NCBI GenBank assembly: GCA_020891255.1
Contig: BQFW01000007.1
Coordinates: forward strand, 1,922,001-1,986,000
DNA: 64,000 bases
DNA from: Entomortierella parvispora E1425
Taxonomy: Eukaryota; Fungi; Mortierellomycota
Direction of reading: 5' to 3'
The notes beneath the pieces are model-generated. The model did no database searches, was not told the origin of the DNA, and saw nothing but the letters and a program-made list of their open reading frames with translations. Positions 1-32,802 of this stretch are shown here, piece after piece. Position 1 is the first letter of the stretch, and the number at the start of each line of letters is the position of its first letter. The position numbers and the translations under genes were made by a program.

Positions 1-1400
1 AGGGCATCCGCGAACGTCTGAGTCGAAGTAAACAATTTCTCATAGGCATGGACCTGTTTATCAAACTGCTGTTGCCTCTCCTCTGACAGTTCACCTCGAG
101 CAAACAAAGAAGATTCGTTCTTGCGTTCCTGCTTTTTCTTTTCCTGTATCAAGAAAAAAAGGGACCCACTGTCAGTGCTGCGGTTGATTCTCCATTTTGT
201 TTCTATTATCCGCAGTTGCTCAAAAGTACCTTATGATCGCGAACGAGATGCGGCTCCAAACTTTTGTAGTATTCCAAGAACATGGACTTGAACAGCTGCT
301 GTTGTACCGGAGAGACATTGGATTCTGTTGATGCTGCCTCTTCTCCAGTTGCAGGCTTGCTGTCTGCCTCTTTGCCTTCTGGGGTCACTTTTGCCTTTCG
401 TGGGGTGATACCAGTCAAGTCCTTGCTATGAATCTTCAGAACTGTCAACAGAATTGGCAAGTTGACATGCTCCTTGTCCCCTGCAAGCTATTCCATTAAA
501 AACGAAGATCGTGATGAGTGCCCTGTTTTCCATCGATCAATCCGTGGGAACACACCACAGCAGCCATAACTTTGCCTCTTTGCCATACCAAATCATGTAG
601 GATAACATAAACAAAGTTGGGAGATGCTTTGGAGCTGTCTCCGGCATTTCTGGGATCCTTGCTACCATTGACAAGTAAAGCGGCGACACTGTCCTTGGCC
701 GCCTGTCCACTCTTGCTCGAGACGCCTGCCGACCCTTCCGCACTCAGGGTGGCGACGCCATCCTCTGCATTCCGTAGGACCCTGGCGAGCCAGAGATCTG
801 TCGCGACACGACAAAGGTTGCGTTGACGAGAAATCCTGGAAGCCTCTTCCTTCTCGCGTTGCTCTGGTGTCGATCCGGCTTGAGCCAGTTGCTGGTGAGT
901 CAATTTGGGCGAAGGGGCCAAGGCTTTGGCCAGGTGGTAGGTGAAGAGGAGGGTGAACGTGTCGGGGAAGCGCTGATGCAATGCTGAAATGACGTCCACA
1001 GCGGCGGCGACATCGACCGCCCGACTGCATCGCAGGAGACCTTCGAGGATGGCAGCCACGATCTCGGAGATGTACTTTTCCAAGCTGAGCTTCTTGATGT
1101 CGTTGAGCAACTGAGGCGCGACATCGGCGGTGAGGCCAGCCTTGCACTTTTTGATGAAGGCCGTGTTCTTTTTGATGTTGGAATCAAGGTTCTTGAGGGC
1201 AGAGGGATCTATGAGGGACATGGATGGAAACAATGCGAGATTTAGCAACCACGACCTGGGCGTGTCATTGGCCATGGCATGGAACGCAATGCTGTCTAAT
1301 GCGATTCAATGCGATTCAATGCGATTCAATGCGAATCCTGACCTGGCTTGGTCAGCCATGCCGCCAAATTGGCCTGTCGAAGGTCTTGTCGGTTCGCCAC
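1..1400 (-). CDS. UPF2: Nonsense-mediated decay factor Upf2/Nmd2, 5' part (MIF4G-1); gene continues past the left edge; true start uncertain
   Basis: ORF 496..1275 contains LDSNIKKNTAFIKKCK...LSLEKYISEIVAAILEGL...ALHQRF, the Upf2 MIF4G-1 signature. Downstream exons give LEYYKSLEPHLVRDHK and LFARGELSEERQQQF, matching Upf2. A GT-AG intron at 1342..1209 joins an upstream exon (VANRQDLRQANLAAWLTKP) in frame to DPSALKNLDS. Confidence 0.93.
1298..1334. repeat. 10-bp tandem repeat (GCGATTCAAT)x3 plus partial copy, inside UPF2 intron 1
   Basis: Exact copies at 1301-1310, 1311-1320 and 1321-1330. Confidence 0.95.
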
Positions 1401-1509
1401 GATTGCAGATTGGAGGATGGAGGAAAGGGAGTGTCCGATTGGTCAGGAGAAATGGAGTAGAAGGAAAGAGGGCGATGGGGGGTTAGCAAAAGAGGAGCAG
1501 GCGATCAAA

Positions 1510-1552
1510 GAAGAAGAAGAAGAAGAAGAAGAAGAAGAAGAAGAAGAAGAAG

Positions 1553-1581
<29 letters not shown>
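1510..1581. repeat. Perfect (GAA)24 trinucleotide microsatellite between UPF2 and SMG1
   Basis: 72 uninterrupted nt of GAA, read directly from the sequence. Confidence 0.97.
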
Positions 1582-1585
<4 letters not shown>

Positions 1586-2177
1586 AAAGAATGACAAGGA
1601 ACGAACACAACACAACACAGCACATGCAGGACAGGGCAGGACAGGACAGGACAATTCGCCCATGGGGATCATTCAATCAATTGTCACATGGCATGATCGC
1701 TTCCTTCCTCCTTTGAGCCGTTTCTTCTTTTTTTTCTTCTCCTTCTTCTCCCTTCCTCTTCTCTCTTTGCTTGCTGAATCCCATTCATCTTTTTTGTCAT
1801 CGTCAAGGCAGATTCGATCTGTCTTTCTTCTTCGTCTTTCTCCTTCAGTCAGCCCTTGGCTCTCCTTCTCTCCACCGTCGCATTCTTCTCCCCGTCCCAT
1901 CCATGACCAGGACGCGCTCGCTGCATCTAATCTCTTTGACAACGACTCCTTCACTAAACAAACCGACATCCCTTCCTAGGGCCCTTTTGAATCCCAAAAC
2001 AATGCAAATGAATACTCGTTCGATCAGATCATCCGCCCTTGCCTGAAATCGACCCTTTCTCCTTTCTCTTTTCACCTGCGCCTCGTCGCCCGTTTCCTCT
2101 GCTTCGCCTCTTTCTTTCCCTTTTTGATCCCACCCTTTCTTCTCTCTCCCCACAAGCCCAGCGCCTTTTAACCCACC

Positions 2178-5100
2178 ATGGTCAGTATCAACGCAAAGTG
2201 CTAAGAAAAAGAAGGAAAAACTCGCTGTTGAAGCTCACCGCAGTCTCTGCAAATGGTTTGCTTCCTCATAGAAGAGCACGCATCGTCGCCCGCAGCCAAA
2301 GAACGCGGCTCTCGTGCCCTCTTACGCACCGACATTTGTGCCCATGCCCAAGCAAGAGCCGGAAGGACTGCGGCCAAACCATGGTATGCGGCCTCGGAGC
2401 AAATCCACAACGACGCGCCAAGGACGCTCTCCACTTCCAGCTGACTGAACGGACTCTCCTCCCCTTTTTTAGGCGTCAAAGTGAAGTACGATCTCCAGAC
2501 TGCCACCATGATGCTGGAAGAGATAGAAGATGCTTTGGATAGGACAGCGGATAGCACCGGTCTGGTTCAGACCTTGGACCAGCTCCTGGTCTTGTCAGGA
2601 CAGCAGCCTATAGCATGGGAACCTAAATTCAGGGTAAACTACCAGGACCTGCGACCACATGCCTGGCCCGACAGTAGAATTTTATCCGCTTGCTAACTCG
2701 ATGACTTCCACTTTTTTAAGGGCATTATTGACTTGCTTGTTGGATGGCATGTTGACCTCGGAACAAATGCAGCAGTGAGGAAGCGTATCAGTGGTAGGCT
2801 CCACCTTTCCTTTTCTTCCCTTGACAACCGCTGCTCTATGCCTCAACTCGAAACCTTACAGATCGACTCGTTCTGGATGCAATAGATGTTCTCTCCTCCT
2901 TTTCGATGCAGTGGACGAGCGCCGCAGACTTTGGTCAAGATCTTTTAGAATTTTTCATCAACGATATCGACTGTATCATTGCGGACTCTGCTACAGCTAC
3001 TGGAGCTCCTTCATCGATGGAGACTGCGGTTTTGCTCATGAGGTACTTTTTGAGTTTCTTAACCTCTGTGAAAAGTCTGGGAGAGAATTTAGGCAGTTGC
3101 TTTTACGGAGAAAAGCATTGTCGCTTACTGTATACATTTTCTTTTATCACAGCTGTTTCAACATCATTGCCAAAGCACTCATTGGTCATGCCTACATGTC
3201 CCTTGACCGCCTTGCCGCTATTCAGGAGAGAACAGTCGGAGTGATTGCAAGAATGGACACCTCCTACAAACCCTGCATAGCCGCCGGTATGAAAAAAGAG
3301 CATCAAATAACGACAAATCCGTTGCTCTCTCATTTCTGACCCTTGGACTTATTTCTAGGCAACGATATCATCTTGACCCTGAGCCAAGGGGATGCGTCCT
3401 CGTTTTATACCCTGCAGCCTAAATCGCTGCATTTTATCATCAAGCAGCTCAACCCTCAGGCGGACAGGGCAACATGGCGAGGCATGGTCAAATACACTAA
3501 AAAGGTTGGCTCTAGCAACGGTTCTGTAGCTTCGCCTTATATATCTACAAGTATTCTAACAATATCTCGTGCGAAAATAGATTCTTGGATACTGGCGACC
3601 GCACATCCACCATGAGGTCATGCACGAACTATTGCATGCAAAGAGTAGATTGATGCAAAGTCGTTGGCGTGTGTCAGGAAACGCGGATCGGGCCCAGGAT
3701 GTACTCGACATTATTCTTTTGGCGCTACCTGCTACACCCCCAGATGAACCGGACATACCGCCCATTGATAAATCTGGCCCACTTGGCGCTGCATGGATCA
3801 GTATCATGGATGAGCTCGAGCAGATCCTTCAACGCCTCTCCGCCAGCAACTTTCTGTCAAATCGGGAAGATTTCAGATCTGCCCTTCAAAACTCAAAACT
3901 GTTACACACAGATGTGCCGTTATCGAAATATGAAAAGCAGGATGTGATTGAACATTCGACAGACAGAGACCTCGTTGTCAATCTCACTATTGATACCATG
4001 CTTCTTGTGGAGATTTCAAAACACACGGAAATCACTTTCACTATGCTTGTGCGCCTATTGGAGCAGCTTTTGGTCGTACCCGAGGAACGTCTGACAGTTG
4101 TCCTCTATGCCCTCAAGGAAATATCTGAAGGGTAAGTATTTCTGTTTGCTCTTCTCCACCTCGGACGAGTCAAGCATCTTTACTCAATTTTTTACTTTTT
4201 GCTTTTAGGCAAGATCATTACGCACCAGGACTGTTTGAGAGCAACCTTTCAGAACATTCGGACTCAATATCAACGACAGCTCTTGGCAAAATACATGGAT
4301 TCGTTCAGGCTCTTGTTTCTCAGTGGCGCTTATTACCAAGTGCTATGAAGATCTGTATTATTGCCTGGGATGCCAGTATAAAGACCACAATTCGTATATT
4401 CCGTCCTGTCGACAATGTGGCCAGAATGTGGAAGGCCCTTAAGAACTGGCACTCGTCATTTCTCCCCAGGCTGATCATCATAGCAGGTACCTTATTTTGG
4501 CTTGTGCCGTAGCATGGTGTTGATGGATTGTGAGTTGTAATTGTTATATTTTTTTGTGGCGATGTAGGCATTGAAGAAGACGAACTTATTCGAAGGCATA
4601 TGGCGATCATGTTCGAGCAGTTCATTCTAACCTATGGATCTATGAGCATCGGTCCAGATCTCCTAGTGAGCATGATCGACAGGTACGTGGTTTTATCTAT
4701 CTCATACATAGACCGCCTATATCAACTTTGAAACTAAGCCCGAACTCCTCCCTTGATATGCAGATCAACAGATGTGTCGTCTCAAGTGGGTGACGCATGG
4801 AGTAAAGTTGTCTTCCAGTCGAATCCGTTCGAGTTTGCGTTCGACTGCTACAATCGCCATGACAAGGATGTACTACAGACGCTAAAAGTAAGAACTACTC
4901 TGCAGATCTTGAAAATAACTCTGACCCATCTGCCCATTAATGCTAACCACGCCTGGGGGATTCTTTTTAGCTTCTGGTACTGAAGACACCAAACTCGGGA
5001 ATATTTCGATACCCGCACTTTTCGATCGTTCTTTCCTCCATGACTCTCTCTGGCGATGAGTCGGTAAGGGGCAGTACCGTCAACTACAGGAATGGTGATA

Positions 5101-8100
5101 TGCTTCAACGACTGTTTCACGCTTGTCAAGGTAGGGAAACCTTGGCAAGGGTGAACGCGGATAGTAGCTCTGGTAAGCGAAGGATTTCCAACAATGCAAT
5201 GATTCGTGAAGTGATACTTCCCAGCACAATAACACCATTTGTTATACGCTGCTGTAGATACGGTGTCGAACGATCAACTAGCGGTCTTCCAACACTCTCA
5301 AAATTTGTTGCGATACTGGGCACTTTGGGAAACAGCTCGTTACTGTGTACTGTCGCGGTTGAGGACGCCATTTGGTGGACCTCAGCAGACTTTGGATGCT
5401 TTAGAGAAGCACTTGAATTCTCTCCTGCGGTCGGATCAAAAAAAGATGGACAGCGATGCAAGGTAAATCGAAGGGCATTGTATTTCCTGTACTGCACCGT
5501 TGTCGTCGGCGCCGCTGATTAACTTGGGCTGTTTCGATAGATTGAACCCCCTGCGAGACTTTTTGAACTTTTTGGATCGCCTTGAACTTCAGTTCTACAA
5601 TGCTGCTCAAGGAACAGCCTTGGGTGTAATTCCGTTGGCTCCAAAGCCTACTATTGTTTTTGCACGGTCTAACAAAAGGATGTGGGATGAATGGTTTGCC
5701 CGTGTGCGGAGACGCACGATTGAAGGTGCCAAAGCTACAGACGAGCACGAGCTAGTGATTCGTCATGGATATATGGTAAGGGGAGGAACCTATGGATCTG
5801 ACAGGTTCCCAGGCCAGAATCTAATGAAAAACTAAATTGTAGCTTCTGTCAGAGTTGTTTGACTCCCTCAGCCGGGGGGCTGTGAGTGACATCATTCCAT
5901 GGATCGATGATTTCGAGCTACTTCTGGTTGATCTGGGTAAGTGTCAATTCCACTGCCAGACCACATTCTGCATCTTTTCTCACACGTGCCGCTAACACAT
6001 CACCTTGGGTGTATTCTAGTCGAAGCTCTCATTGCCACCAATTCCGCAGATGCCATCACGGGGCTCCAAGTATGGTGTCGCCGTGCTATTAAGGACTTGA
6101 CTAAACAGACAGGTGGAAGATCGCGCCATTCGCGGTCTGATAAATCCTCGCAGCGTAAGTTCCCGTGCTCTAGCTGCTCCCAAGGTCAAAGACCAGCCAT
6201 ATGACTGACTGAGCTGTATCATGCTGAAAATGTAGATCTGAGGTTCAAAAATGCATGTCTGAACGAAGTGCAGGCCGCGGCACTCTCTCAGATTTCTTTA
6301 GACTGGATCGCCACAGCAGTTTCACGAGCGCAGGTACGTACGCAGGATTTTTTTTTTTTTTTTTTTTTTTTTTGAAATTTCGGACTACAGGACTTTTCAC
6401 TGACTTTTGCGTCGGTAATCGTTTTAGCATCGATATGAACAGTTTGCAAAGGATGCAGTCCCTCTTGTAGGGTCGTACTCAGAGGGTCAATCTGCCGATG
6501 ATATCACACCGCCTGAAGAATTTCTTTCGCGGCAGATCTCTGCTGGTCTCGGTGATTTGTGCAGCTACAAAGATCTCCAATCGTTCCTAGATTCAATACC
6601 CATTGATGTCCTCTCCGACCAGACCTACCCTTGGAGTGGAGATGCTATGAATCAAAGTCTACGACGGTACTGTGCAGAGGATTCGACTGAAGCTTGGAAA
6701 CACCTCGAGGACTACTACAGTGTGGAAAGCAAAGAGTTACATGAGCTGGAATTGACTCCTCTTGAACAAAGCGCAGTCCATGGAAGGAACTTTCTCTTTG
6801 CCTCCAAGATTTATCAGCAACACAGTGCCAGCACTCTGGACCTGGGTCATCTACGTCAGGAAGCGGCCGCGTTCGCGCGCAAATCGGCTGAATTTTCGTT
6901 TGGAAGTGGTCTGGGCCATGCAAATACAAAGTACATGGATATTATGATGCTCAATACGGCCGAGTCAACAATGCCTATGGCCATGAAGGAGCTTATGGAT
7001 CAACTCGCTCAAATTCCGGACGAGCTGAAGATGAATCTTTTAAACAAGGATCTGAGGAACTGGGTCCGACTCGATACCATGGTCAACCTCGCTAAAAAAC
7101 AAGTTGGAAAAGACGATACATGCTTTGTGAAACAAGCAAACGAGTTCAAATTCTTGCTCTCCAAGATTGCACGAAGGACAGACTGTCACAGCTTCGCGAG
7201 TGACATCCCAAGGACTTGGGAAGGCGCCCTGTCGCCCGAGATTCAGTTTGAGGAGGCCAAAGCGGCGATGGCAAAACACGACTATACAACAGCATTAGAG
7301 TCCTCCAGACGAATATTGGACAGGATGCAGCAAGGGACAGATATGCCAATACAGGCTTGCACGCCGGCAGTTCTACTGGAGAGCAAGATCTATCTAAAAC
7401 TGGCCAAGTGGTCCCGTTCTTCCAAACCTTCTTTCTCAGCAGATCATTTGGAGACATTTGAGAACATTATCGGCTTGGAGCATGACATGGCGGAACAACT
7501 TCCTGCGCGAATTGAGCGGATCACCTCCAGCTGCCTTCAAAAGGCGATCGAAATTGGATCTGACTACCGAAAGTCTTGGTTTGCATTTGGAACTCATCAT
7601 TACAAGCAAGGTTGGGGAATCTTGGATGAGCTTGGATCATTCCGATTCCATCACCCCGTAGCAACAGCTGCCAATGAAACTCTCAAGGGCATACTGGTCG
7701 CGGCGGGCATTGATCACCCAGCCGATCACTCCAAGGTATTTTTTTTTTTTTTTTGAGTGCAGCTACTCGGTAGAATGTTGGGGATACTTATTGTCTAATT
7801 CACTCTGAATGGATCTAGAACATCTTTTCTGTGTTCGTGAGGCATTGCGCTTCCGGTCAACCATTTGACGAGACGTCAGCGTACGAAAGTATTCGAGCCC
7901 ATCTGCTCAAGATTGAGGGACTGTCGGCAGCTGAGAATGTGATTTCAGAAATCATTGGTTCTTTCCAGACTCTGCTCTTGCGCATCTTGGAAACCTATCG
8001 ATTGGCTATTCGGGGTTACTTCAAGTTTCTTCAGTTTGCCTCTCTTGAATTTGATTGCAGGCAGCCTGGGTCAAAGGTACGCTTCCCACCAACACATTTT

Positions 8101-10777
8101 TGCGGCTTACAACACAAAAAACATTGACCCATTTTTTTTTTTTTGACTAATTAGAACGTGTTGGAAGAGGACGACTCAACACAGCAATCTCAGTCAGCAA
8201 TCACGGACGAAATTACAGCCACTCTGCGACTGCTTCGACTGCTGGCAAAACATGGCGCACAACTCTACGACGTGTTTAAAGAGAACCTAGTCGATATCAA
8301 TGTTCGACCTTGGGCGAACATCATTCCACAATTGTTTGCGCGTCTCGATCACCCAGAGCAGCCTGTACAGTCCTTGATTGCAGATCTACTCTGCAAGATT
8401 GGCGATCAAAGCCCTCAGCTGATTGTCTTTCATTGTGTGGTGGGCAGTAACTCTGCACACAACAGTCTGGTACAGCGAAAATTGCTCCGCCATATTGGCG
8501 AGGCCTTGACACGAACCCACCCCGAACTGGTGACACAGGTTCAACATTTGGTTCGAGAACTTGAAAGAGTCACAGTGCTGTGGGAGGAAATCTGGTTCAA
8601 AAAGATTATGTCGGGCGTTCCGGAACTCAAGGCTGCCCTTCAAGATCTGACTGAACAATACCAAGGTCTGGAGGTGATATCTGGACTGGGGCCGGAAGAG
8701 AAACACACGGTCATGTATGACAACTATCAACAGACTGTGATCCCACTCTTGGCGACATTTGAGAGCTTGCAGGATTCGAACGCAAGACCGGAATCGAACC
8801 ATGAACGGTGGTTTATTTCAGCTTTCAGGGATCGAATCCAGGATGCGTTGGAGAGCATGCGCTCCCCGAAATCTTGGAGCAATATGTATGAGGGTCTGGC
8901 GAAACTGAAAGAGGTAAATATTTTCTTTTTTCTTTTTCTTTTTAATATTTTGTTTTGCTGTTTGCCTCTACAAGAAACAAAACTAATGACCGCCAATACA
9001 CTAGATCCACAGCGATCTTGGAAAGGAAGTGATGGGGTCGCGCGTGCTCCAACTCGCAGACCTGAGTCCTGAACTGGCGTCGTTGCAGTCGTCTCTCATT
9101 GAAGTCCCCAACCAATCTACAGGAGTGACCATTCAGTCTTTTGATCAACAAGTTGTTGTGATCCCGACAAAAACCAAGCCAAAGAAACTGAGTTTGATGG
9201 GCTCGGATGGAAAACGATATACGTATTTGTTCAAGGGACTGGAGGATCTTCACCTGGATGAACGTGTGATGCAATTGCTCCGGATCTCGAATGGCATGCT
9301 TGTTCGCGACAAGGAGTCCAATTCAAGACAGCTGAGCGCACGGCACTATGCGGTCGTTCCTCTGAGTGACAACTCGGGCATGATTCAGTGGGTCGAGAAC
9401 ACCGTATCTATCTTTACCATTATTGCAAAATGGCAACACCGAGAGTTGATGTGCAATCGTTGGATGAACGACGATACAGGGACTTCAGCAGGACCGCAAG
9501 TGCTCCAACGCGCCACGGAAGTATATAACGAGAAAGCAGCTGCGGCACTCAAGAAGGCCGGGCTGCCAACAAACCATCCTCGAAAGCTTTGGTCGAAGTC
9601 CATGCTTGTGGATCTTTACCAGGAGATGGCTAGCGAAACCCCGGCGGATCTGCTGGAACGTGAACTTTGGGCATCAAGTCCGACGTTGTCGGAATGGTGG
9701 CGCAAATCAGTTCGATTCTCACGGTCGACGGCCGTCATGTCGATGATTGGATATGTGATTGGGCTCGGCGACCGGCATTTGGATAATATCTTGATTGATT
9801 TCACGACAGGGGATATGGTCCACATTGATTACAACGTCTGCTTTGAGAAGGGTCGTCGACTTCGCATCCCCGAGATTGTGCCCTTCCGACTGACTCGTAA
9901 CATGCTGACAAGTCTGGGCGCGACGGGTGTTGAAGGCAACTTTAGGATCGCGTGCGAACAGACGATGAAGGTCATGCGAAAGAACAAGGAGATCTTGGTG
10001 ACGCTCCTGGAAGCCTTTGTGTACGATCCCCTTGTGGATTGGCAGGTGGATGTGAATGCTGCTCAAGGAGGAGCTGGAGCACCTGGAGCTCCCACTGGAG
10101 TTCATGGAGTGACAGCAGCCGACATGGGAAGCTTGGTATCGACTGGCCCAGGCGCCAACAGCAGCACTACCGACCTTGCGTCTTTGTTGTCTCGAGATGG
10201 ACTCCAGAGTTTGGCGGTAGACAGTGAAAGCGAGAGCGGCAGTGTGGTCTCGAGCTCGACCTATGCATCAAGAAATCGTCAGCGGGACTCGAAGGCATCC
10301 CTTGACAGTAATTCGGCCCGGTCCATGGGCCTTTGGCGGCGGCCCTCGACGGACAGTCTGGTGTCGGTCAGTAGTAGGAGTATCCAGTCAATTTCCACCA
10401 ATGCTACGACGGTAGAATCAAGCTCCAAGAGCATCACCGCCGGAGGCGGTCGCTGGAACACAGGCGCAGGCGATCCATTGGTGGATTCTTCAACGGGACA
10501 TTCAAATGGTGGCGATGGTGGTACGAGTACCATGTCCCTCCAGGCACACCCTCCTCCTCACCAACAGCAACCACAGCAACAACAACAGCCTCCGCTGCAT
10601 CAGAGAAACGCGTACGCGGTCAATATCCTGCGACGGGTACGACACAAGTTGGAGGGACGTGATTTTGATCCAGCCAAGAAGTGCAAAGTAGCGGAGCAGG
10701 TGGATCGGGTGATTCAGGAAGCGACGCAGGTGGAGAACCTGGCCAACATGTATGAAGGGTGGACTCCATGGTTGTAG
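2178..10777 (+). CDS. SMG1: SMG1 PIKK-family serine/threonine kinase (NMD, Upf1 kinase), about 20 exons
   Basis: Exons traced by eye give FRGIIDLLVGWHVD, WALWETARYCVLSRLRTPFGGPQQT, LDRLELQFYNAAQG, WANIIPQLFARL, VLWEEIW, kinase YLFKGLEDLHLDERVMQLL...GLGDRHLDN...HIDYNVCFEKG, and FATC QVDRVIQEATQVENLANMYEGWTPWL*. These fit SMG1 rather than TOR/ATR. Proposed start is ATG 2178-2180 followed directly by a GT-AG intron 2181..2271 (start less certain than identity). Last exon is 9005..10777. Confidence 0.95.
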
Positions 10778-15222: not shown

Positions 15223-16319
15223 TTTTTTTGGGATATGGGGTTGGCTTGGTAGGGCGGGATGGGTGTGGGTTGGTATTCTTGTATTAAAAGGAAAGGGTGA
15301 AAGACAGAACACTGAAAAAGGTATCGACTGAAGGAAAGATGAAAGGCAGGGGTATGGACGGGATGGGATTAGCCAGCAAAGGGACTAAAAGACGAGGTCG
15401 AGGACGAGAGAGAGGTTGTAGTCCGGGTGGAGGCGGTGGTGCGGTAGCGAAGAGTGCTGGCAGAGGAAGGTTTGACTGGAGGGTTGATCATGGTGGGTTA
15501 TCAGGGTATGTGTGGGTGGGTGCTAGGAGAAAACAAGGTGCAAATGCATGCAGGTCAAGCAAAGGTGGGGTGGATATACGAGGTGGGGGTGCAGAGAGTC
15601 CAGGAAAGGACGGGGGTGCTTAGTGAGAGGTAACCATCTTGGTGGAACAACAATTGAAGGCAGATAGGGTATAGGTGAAAAGGAAAAGGAAAAGAAAAGA
15701 CGGAAAAGAAACAACGAGTGAAGGTGAAGACAGAAAGAAAGAAAGAGAAAGAAAGAAAGAGAAAGAAAGAAAACGAACAAGAAAGAAGATGAAGAAGAAT
15801 GGAAAGTGATGAGGAAAGAGGACAAGAGAGAGACGAGGCAAGTGAGGGTTTTATTCAAGGAAAGAAAGGGAAGAAACGGCAGGCGGCAGAATGACGAAGC
15901 GGACAAGTCAGAAACGACATGAGGACAGAAGAGGCAACTGGCCCGTGATTGGTCAGAGCGTTCTTTTTTTAATCTTGGCCGTATCTGTGCTGGCTGTCTG
16001 GTCTGACTGACTGTCTGACTACAACAGTCTGTCGGGTTCCAATCACACCACGGGGGCACCCCACGAACAAAAACAGGCGTGGCTGACGTGCTGGGTCCAG
16101 TCGAGGTGGGCCACAGCACACAATGCAAATCACCTCGAATCAGAGCACACTCGAGAAAGCCAAAGAAGACTCTGGAACAATGCCACCATCAGCCGTTGGT
16201 CGGATATCATTTGTTTTTTGAATGAGGCAATATTTTTTATCATTTTATGTAGGCATTACTACTTTATTCCAGATTCTGGTTCCAAGGAGAGTCTGTCTGT
16301 CTCCCTCTTTCTTGTCCCG

Positions 16320-32143: not shown

Positions 32144-32802
32144 GAGGGCAGATGATGATGGCGATGATGTTCAGGGAAGGGACGGACAGGGCGGGCGGGA
32201 ATGGACATGGACCGAGGAAGGAAAAGAGAAGAAAGAGAAAAAGAGAGAGAGGGAGGGAGGGGAGAGAGAGTCGAACGGCAACAGCGAAGAGAGCGAAGAA
32301 GAGAGAAGAAGAGAGCCGCGGACAAAAGGAGAAAGAGTGTGTGAACACTAACACTGAATGAATGAAAGGTGGGAGAAAGAAGGAAAGCACACTTGCCCAG
32401 ACTGTGTTCTTTTTTACTGTTCACTTGTTCACTTGTTCACTTTTCGCCTCTCTTTTCGTTTTCGCGCGCGCGCGCTCTTTTCTGGTTCGTCCCCCTTTTT
32501 CTCGCTCACTCTCTTTCTCTCTATCTCTCTCTCTCTCTCTCCTCGGCCACGTTCCTTTCATTCTGGGTCTTCTGCTCGTCCTTTGTCCTTCTCTTCCTTC
32601 CTCCGTCTCTTTCTTCTTTGCTTTCGCACACAGGACTCGCTCTTTCTTGCACACGGCCCTTTCTTTCCCTCTTCTTCCCTTCTCCCTCTCCCTCTCCCTC
32701 TGCCTTTGCCTTCCAGCCAGCCAGACTCAGCCCGCCCTCTTTCTCTTCCCATCCTCCCAGTCTCCCATGATTGGCATCCAGCGCAAGGAGACCTGTACTG
32801 AC

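Follow-up and report, generated by a model that had tools for sequence, protein, structure and literature searches.

Head-to-head UPF2 and SMG1 genes in the Mortierellaceae, with a conserved upstream open reading frame and a likely GUG start

The UPF2 and SMG1 genes at the locus

The kinase SMG1 and its activator UPF2 both take part in one step of nonsense-mediated mRNA decay (NMD). We analysed a stretch of 64,000 nucleotides from the soil fungus Entomortierella parvispora E1425 (the window), at the left end of which the genes for these two proteins lie head to head, UPF2 on the minus strand and SMG1 on the plus strand (Table 1). These identities had been proposed by a first-pass annotation made from the letters of the sequence, and Pfam domains, PDB matches, bit scores and GenBank models agree with them.

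A Pfam search placed a kinase domain (PI3_PI4_kinase, PF00454, 1.1e-61) and a FATC domain (PF02260, 1.1e-13) in the plus-strand exon at 9029-10777. The FATC domain follows the kinase domain at the extreme C terminus of a protein that ends in YEGWTPWL and a stop codon. When compared with human PIKKs, this exon scored 445 bits against SMG1, 251 against mTOR, 217 against ATR, 193 against ATM and 132 against DNA-PKcs, and the window kinase clusters with named fungal SMG1 proteins. With Dissophora SMG1 as a tblastn query, 12 collinear segments were recovered between 2478 and 10774 of the window, and the GenBank model of the locus (P0160, at locus L003) carries the SMG1-specific N-terminal domain PF15785.

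The minus-strand open reading frame at 496-1275 contains a MIF4G domain, and its sole PDB matches are yeast Nmd2 (4LUN, 1.7e-20) and human UPF2 (4CEM, 4e-11). In the full UPF2 model (1247 aa, L003), MIF4G is joined by the C-terminal UPF1-binding Upf2 domain, PF04050. L003 is the window's own locus (100% identity, BQFW01000007.1, GCA_020891255.1) and was left out of the count of independent cases; its GenBank models list MIF4G and Upf2 for one gene and SMG1, PI3_PI4_kinase and FATC for the other.

Judged from these domains and scores, both genes are securely identified: they are true orthologues of UPF2/Nmd2 and SMG1, and they stand head to head. Nothing was found in favour of the alternative that these are misidentified PIKK and MIF4G proteins, or that the junction between them is an assembly mis-join. 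That alternative is already refuted, as the kinase scores far higher with SMG1 than with TOR, ATR or ATM, the full gene models contain PF15785 and PF04050, and the same gene junction recurs in four further independent assemblies.

Table 1. Features of the UPF2-SMG1 locus in window coordinates. A slash marks a splice junction; uORF, upstream open reading frame.
Feature	Position	Strand	Basis and remarks
UPF2/Nmd2 coding exons, second and later (first MIF4G)	1-1208	-	Pfam, PDB; gene runs past the left edge of the window
UPF2 intron (GTCAGG...CATAG)	1209-1342	-	Cross-species comparison; contains ATG 1221 and a 10-bp tandem repeat
First conserved UPF2 coding segment, V-A-N-R-Q-D-L-R-Q-A-N-L-A-A-W-L-T-K-P	1343-1400	-	Alignment A2
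Putative UPF2 leader, pyrimidine-rich (sense), ATG-free, with (TTC)n microsatellite at 1508-1591	1401-1624	-	Composition, ATG map
Putative promoter core, strand-asymmetry switch point	1625-1695	.	Suggested by composition and ATG maps
Putative SMG1 leader, pyrimidine-rich	1696-2177	+	Composition profile, ATG map
SMG1 uORF encoding MNTRSIRSSALA; stop TGA 2044-2046	2002-2046	+	14 codons from ATG 2002, 12 from ATG 2008
SMG1 start codon, final three bases of exon 1 (ATG/GTCAGT)	2178-2180	+	Layout common to relatives; GenBank protein
SMG1 intron 1, phase 0, 91 nt (ATG/GTCAGT...CATAG/AAGAGC)	2181-2271	+	Splice matches GenBank protein
Rest of SMG1, many exons; kinase and FATC in exon 9029-10777; stop 10775-10777	2272-10777	+	tblastn, Pfam, PDB

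The leaders and start codons of the two genes

The spliced SMG1 start agrees with the GenBank protein P0160 (MKSTHRRPQPK). The layout in which the start codon closes the first exon, ATG/GT, is shared by five species, namely E. parvispora, Gamsiella multidivaricata, Mortierella polycephala, Dissophora ornata and Dissophora globulifera, and in Podila horticola the SMG1 ATG has been relocated into the following exon. The D. globulifera contig (L001) ends ~200 bp 5′ of the SMG1 ATG and was used for this layout and for the uORF described below, not for adjacency.

Within the SMG1 leader of the window, the only plus-strand ATGs are those at 1903, 2002 and 2008, all of them in the frame of one short uORF. 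In five of six species a 12-codon uORF is present (window 2002-2046, plus strand; L004:9840-9878, L011:8961-8999, L001:48-86 and L010:9695-9733), located 5′ of the main ATG, at 161-170 nt in four species and at 261 nt in Podila. The predicted peptides in the five species are MNTRSIRSSALA, MLHLLLIEPALA, MLYLLSIGSTLA, MLNILASRSTLA and MSFLLSNSITLA. Both the ATG and the stop are kept (TGA has become TAA in Gamsiella), the terminal [T/A]-L-A is held through synonymous changes, and the two length differences seen in E. parvispora are both of 3 nt. The uORF is the sole strongly conserved block of the UPF2-SMG1 spacer, and 17 of the 22 invariant columns of alignment A1 fall inside it. With its position, length and peptide all conserved among these sequences, it would be classed as a conserved-peptide uORF. 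It belongs to the SMG1 leader, because in Podila, where another gene has come to lie between UPF2 and SMG1, the uORF remains beside SMG1, beyond the insert. Its stop lies ~130 nt ahead of the exon junction made by the ATG/GT intron.

On the opposite strand, the first conserved UPF2 segment (1400-1343) splices over the intron at 1342-1209 onto D-P-S-A-L-K-N-L-D-S. M. polycephala is without this intron and reads continuously across the junction ('...HEKPDPSALKNL'), and Gamsiella, Podila, D. ornata and one soil contig have an intron at the equivalent position. The 10-bp tandem repeat in the window's intron (AATGCGATTC x3.7, at 1298-1334) has no counterpart that we could see at the corresponding site of the other species.

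UPF2 conservation sets in abruptly at an invariant A-N-N-GTG-GC, with A at -3, in the six Mortierellaceae sequences of alignment A2 (window 1343-1445, minus strand; L004:9652-9749, L005:9320-9417, L010:7141-7238, L011:8534-8631 and L014:58-155). The window GTG occupies 1400-1398; the soil contig L014, which came from a metagenome scan, supplies the sixth GTG-start example. On the minus strand of the window, no in-frame ATG was found between the upstream stop, TGA 1445, and GTG 1400. Moreover, the UPF2 leader has no sense-strand ATG over 224 nt in the window or over 138-176 nt in three other species, such that the leaders of the four species together contain none against ~5.4 expected from composition.

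Other starts were considered for UPF2 and set aside. ATG 1359 and ATG 1275 are out of frame or intronic. A split start, A/TG, would be possible in the three species with AAAG/TG, but the window and D. ornata lack the AG. We prefer a GUG start because there is no in-frame ATG, the leader is free of ATGs, conservation begins abruptly at the GTG and the AG is not universal; initiation at the conserved GUG is likely, and it is the most economical reading of the aligned sequences. The GenBank UPF2 start in E. parvispora is ATG 1221, which lies within the intron. The start of the Gamsiella model is likewise intronic, and the M. polycephala model has a spurious upstream exon that would fall in SMG1 intron 1. 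Current UPF2 gene models in these genomes thus begin at the wrong place.

Distribution of the pair among fungi

Fungal SMG1 proteins were gathered by an exhaustive search with the kinase exon, and their loci were then read for neighbours. A direct, head-to-head UPF2-SMG1 pair was found in G. multidivaricata, M. polycephala and D. ornata, with GTG-to-ATG spacers of 291 bp, 317 bp and 531 bp, respectively. In P. horticola, order and orientation are kept, with a gene encoding a 439-aa coiled-coil protein without a Pfam domain in between (L010:7653-9064). Overall, the spacer ranges from 291 to 2757 bp, and at least five Mortierellaceae genera keep the order and orientation of the two genes, one of them (Podila) with the insert. 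Restriction of the adjacency to one assembly or genus had been set beforehand as refuting the first-pass proposal; three more genera have the direct pair, and Podila has it with an insert.

The surroundings of the pair are more variable. All five taxa retain one link only, that between UPF2 and SMG1. The ATG9-UPF2 link survives in three of the five, and the gene 3′ of SMG1 varies by genus, being a Pil1, Perilipin or WH2 gene. Separately, two annotated 'SMG1' models, P0165 (Podila humilis) and P0163 (Lunasporangiospora selenospora), look fused to their neighbours, one with a Pil1 domain and the other with glycosyl-hydrolase 31 domains, and are probably merged gene models.

Outside the family, SMG1 has no UPF2 gene within 10 kb in Calcarisporiella thermophila, Dichotomocladium, Phycomyces, the chytrid Gaertneriomyces or the blastoclad Paraphysoderma, and none in the 3.7 kb available upstream of it in the glomeromycete Ambispora. 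These negatives, which cover Calcarisporiella, two Mucorales, one chytrid, one blastoclad and one glomeromycete, were confirmed by tblastn with pieces of the whole UPF2 gene, independently of gene calls. A metagenome scan with the UPF2 N terminus returned 17 loci with SMG1 near none of them, two Mortierellaceae-like contigs among them being too short upstream. We also observed that the two Mucorales, Dichotomocladium and Phycomyces, have a DerP2-like, Phosducin and SMG1 neighbourhood in common (L006:7918-10000 and L008:734-10000), a conserved setting of SMG1 that differs from the one in the Mortierellaceae.

In an SMG1 gene tree, the Mortierellaceae are monophyletic and the pair occurs on both sides of the split between Podila and the rest, which places its origin, probably, in the common ancestor of the family. 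From this distribution, we infer that the arrangement either originated on the Mortierellaceae lineage or survived there alone; it is a family-level trait, neither confined to a single genus nor shared by all fungi.

A putative divergent promoter and what may maintain the linkage

In the window, 777 bases lie between the UPF2 GTG (1400) and the SMG1 ATG (2178). The spacing of 778 bp given by the first-pass annotation was right at the SMG1 end, ATG 2178; its UPF2 end needs the caveat that it is GTG 1400, with no in-frame ATG there. Pyrimidines make up 0.06-0.30 of the plus strand at 1401-1650, 0.72-0.92 at 1701-1900 and 0.84-0.90 at 2051-2150. The two leaders, each pyrimidine-rich on its sense strand, thus mirror each other about ~1690, and the segment 1625-1695 is the sole part of the spacer with ATGs on both strands. 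Part of the skew is accounted for by a (GAA)~28 microsatellite on the UPF2 side (1508-1591, ~84 bp), which the other species do not have; a mirrored skew is found in all of the other species compared and is weaker there than in the window. The mirror-image leaders that had been pointed out beforehand are therefore real in the composition profile but not specific to the pair, given that equally extreme skew occurs in the tracts at 15601-15800 and 32151-32700 of the window. The latter tract has the same mirror pattern and is probably another divergent promoter.

No shared motif was found in the spacer. Only two 7-mers of the spacer core, and nothing of 8 bases or longer, are present in four of five species, and the window has no copy of a loose 'ACTGCGTSAC' that visual inspection picked out in three species. 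An Rfam search of window positions 1200-2500 gave nothing above threshold, and the sub-threshold matches to microRNAs and snoRNAs stem from the GAA tract being complementary to the TTC-rich tract.

We favour an explanation, moderately probable when taken as a whole, in which a divergent promoter region is combined with leader-level tuning and the linkage is held mainly by a spacer that cannot readily be broken. The 0.3-0.8 kb spacer would most likely form one compact divergent promoter region, that is, one stretch of open chromatin from which transcription starts outward in both directions, and this shared region would give UPF2 and SMG1 similar basal transcription. Gene-specific tuning would probably follow after transcription, through the leaders. 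The SMG1 uORF, with its stop ahead of the ATG/GT exon junction, would make the SMG1 mRNA a substrate of NMD, and UPF2 translation would start, once an AUG-free leader has been passed, at the conserved GUG in its good context. The linkage would persist mainly, we think probably, as a short divergent spacer that is hard to break without promoter damage, and a need for co-regulation is probably not what keeps it.

The start-codon distances of 777, 291, 317 and 531 bp fall within the range that characterizes divergent pairs (5′ ends less than ~1 kb apart). With start codons only 291-777 bp apart, the simplest reading is one divergent promoter region, and a shared divergent promoter is plausible from these distances. 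The case appears most convincing in Gamsiella, where the UPF2 GTG (9709) and the SMG1 uORF ATG (9840) are 130 bp apart, leaving ~130 bp between the leaders. By analogy, both leader features, the uORF and the GUG start, would fit the known self-regulation of decay-pathway genes. The comparison to an operon made in the first-pass annotation is, however, overstated, as the genes lie on opposite strands and point apart, forming two divergent monocistronic genes.

Several observations weigh against a shared promoter with functional leaders. The 777 bp in E. parvispora is room for two separate promoters. In P. horticola a whole gene stands between UPF2 and SMG1, yet both genes and the uORF are kept, and in six further SMG1-bearing fungal lineages UPF2 does not adjoin SMG1. 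No k-mer of at least 8 bases is shared across species between the UPF2 GTG and the SMG1 uORF. The pyrimidine skew, since it occurs elsewhere in the window, is a general leader trait of the E. parvispora genome and not specific to the pair. Finally, no counterpart of the uORF could be recognised in M. polycephala, where there is an overlapping uORF in its stead (L005:9661). The Podila insert, taken with the pair's absence from every other lineage sampled, argues that shared-promoter co-regulation is not essential.

Many of these points would also suit a historical accident, a possible although rather unlikely account in which the two genes were brought together a single time in the Mortierellaceae ancestor and have stayed neighbours through ordinary synteny, with two independent promoters and no meaningful expression coupling. 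The gene inserted in Podila, the lack of a shared motif in the spacer, a spacer length that varies from 291 to 2757 bp and the unlinked genes in all non-Mortierellaceae lineages tested all speak for it, and the retention of ATG9-UPF2 in three of five taxa indicates that local synteny is fairly high anyway. However, the start codons in Gamsiella and M. polycephala are ~300 bp apart and the Gamsiella leaders ~130 bp apart, which leaves little room for two promoters, and the UPF2-SMG1 link has outlived both flanking links in the five taxa.

At the other extreme is the strong reading of the first-pass annotation, an adaptive co-regulation module in which selection for a fixed SMG1:UPF2 proportion acts through one bidirectional promoter to form a small decay regulon. 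It draws on the retention of the link in all five Mortierellaceae genera while the flanks change, on the action of both proteins in one pathway step and on the stronger expression correlation of functionally related head-to-head pairs in vertebrates (PMC1487180). Yet Podila breaks the shared spacer and loses neither gene, a conserved regulatory motif was not found, the link is present in no other SMG1-bearing lineage sampled and no other pathway genes were seen nearby. In addition, with thousands of gene junctions in a genome, chance would be expected to yield one pair of functionally related neighbours. We consider this reading distinctly improbable. We likewise think it improbable that the pair forms a self-adjusting NMD control unit, with one compact divergent promoter for a common transcription level, both mRNAs sensitive to decay and the linkage itself selected. 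In such a unit, SMG1 would respond through its uORF and the intron directly after its ATG, and UPF2 through an obligatory GUG with a strong out-of-frame AUG behind it that would cause early termination.

The favoured explanation, a divergent promoter region with tuning in the leaders, has precedents. Classic divergent pairs of fungi include GAL1-GAL10 and the H2A-H2B histone genes. More generally, genes in head-to-head pairs are apt to be conserved and co-expressed and to have related functions (Li et al. 2006, PMC1487180). Like conserved pairs of this kind, UPF2 and SMG1 are divergent, have a spacer of <1 kb, remain linked across related taxa and serve one pathway. Unlike those pairs, for which co-expression and shared sites have been demonstrated, UPF2-SMG1 is known from sequence and is confined to one fungal family. 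The pair is a further example of this familiar class and no new kind of system. According to Causier et al. (2017, PMC5709506), SMG1 is retained outside Dikarya, including in Mucoromycota sensu lato; their study recorded where the gene is present or absent, treated synteny in plants only and did not report the fungal neighbours of SMG1. Our literature search found no description of the UPF2-SMG1 pair, in line with the first-pass annotation, which knew of none in fungi.

The two leader features also have counterparts. Among fungal regulatory uORFs, the arginine attenuator peptide of CPA1/arg-2 is coupled to NMD. The SMG1 uORF resembles such elements in being short, AUG-initiated, preceded by a purine at -3, kept among relatives and located 5′ of the main start. 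It differs from the arginine attenuator peptide in having no sequence similarity to it, in its 12 codons and in the concentration of its conservation in [T/A]-L-A and the stop. Strong-context uORFs promote NMD in fungi (Cryptococcus), and initiation at codons other than AUG is known from fungi (PMC7049704). As summarized in PMC3783168, which cites Huang 2011 and Yepiskoposyan 2011, uORFs or long 3′ untranslated regions expose the mRNAs of NMD factors to negative feedback, and in Caenorhabditis elegans smg-1 mRNA rises on smg-2 depletion (PMC3783168). As in such feedback, the SMG1 leader has a putative decay-inducing feature, a uORF ahead of an exon junction, and the unusual start of UPF2 could expose some of its mRNA to decay. 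Unlike feedback in animals, the case in Mortierellomycota is one of conserved sequence, and neither the uORF peptide nor the GUG start had been described. Both add new detail to the known theme of self-regulation in the decay pathway.

Collectively, these results extend the picture of how NMD genes are organized by a pair of neighbours that is conserved and specific to one lineage. If the spacer is truly a bidirectional promoter of ~300 bp, it could provide a compact tool for expressing two genes in Mortierella, an oil-producing industrial fungus. Yeasts are without the SMG1 kinase, and fungi of the Mortierellaceae type retain it. The practical value of the locus lies more in the two leader features than in the adjacency, as they offer simple, testable handles on whether NMD genes of early-diverging fungi are subject to negative feedback like that of animals.

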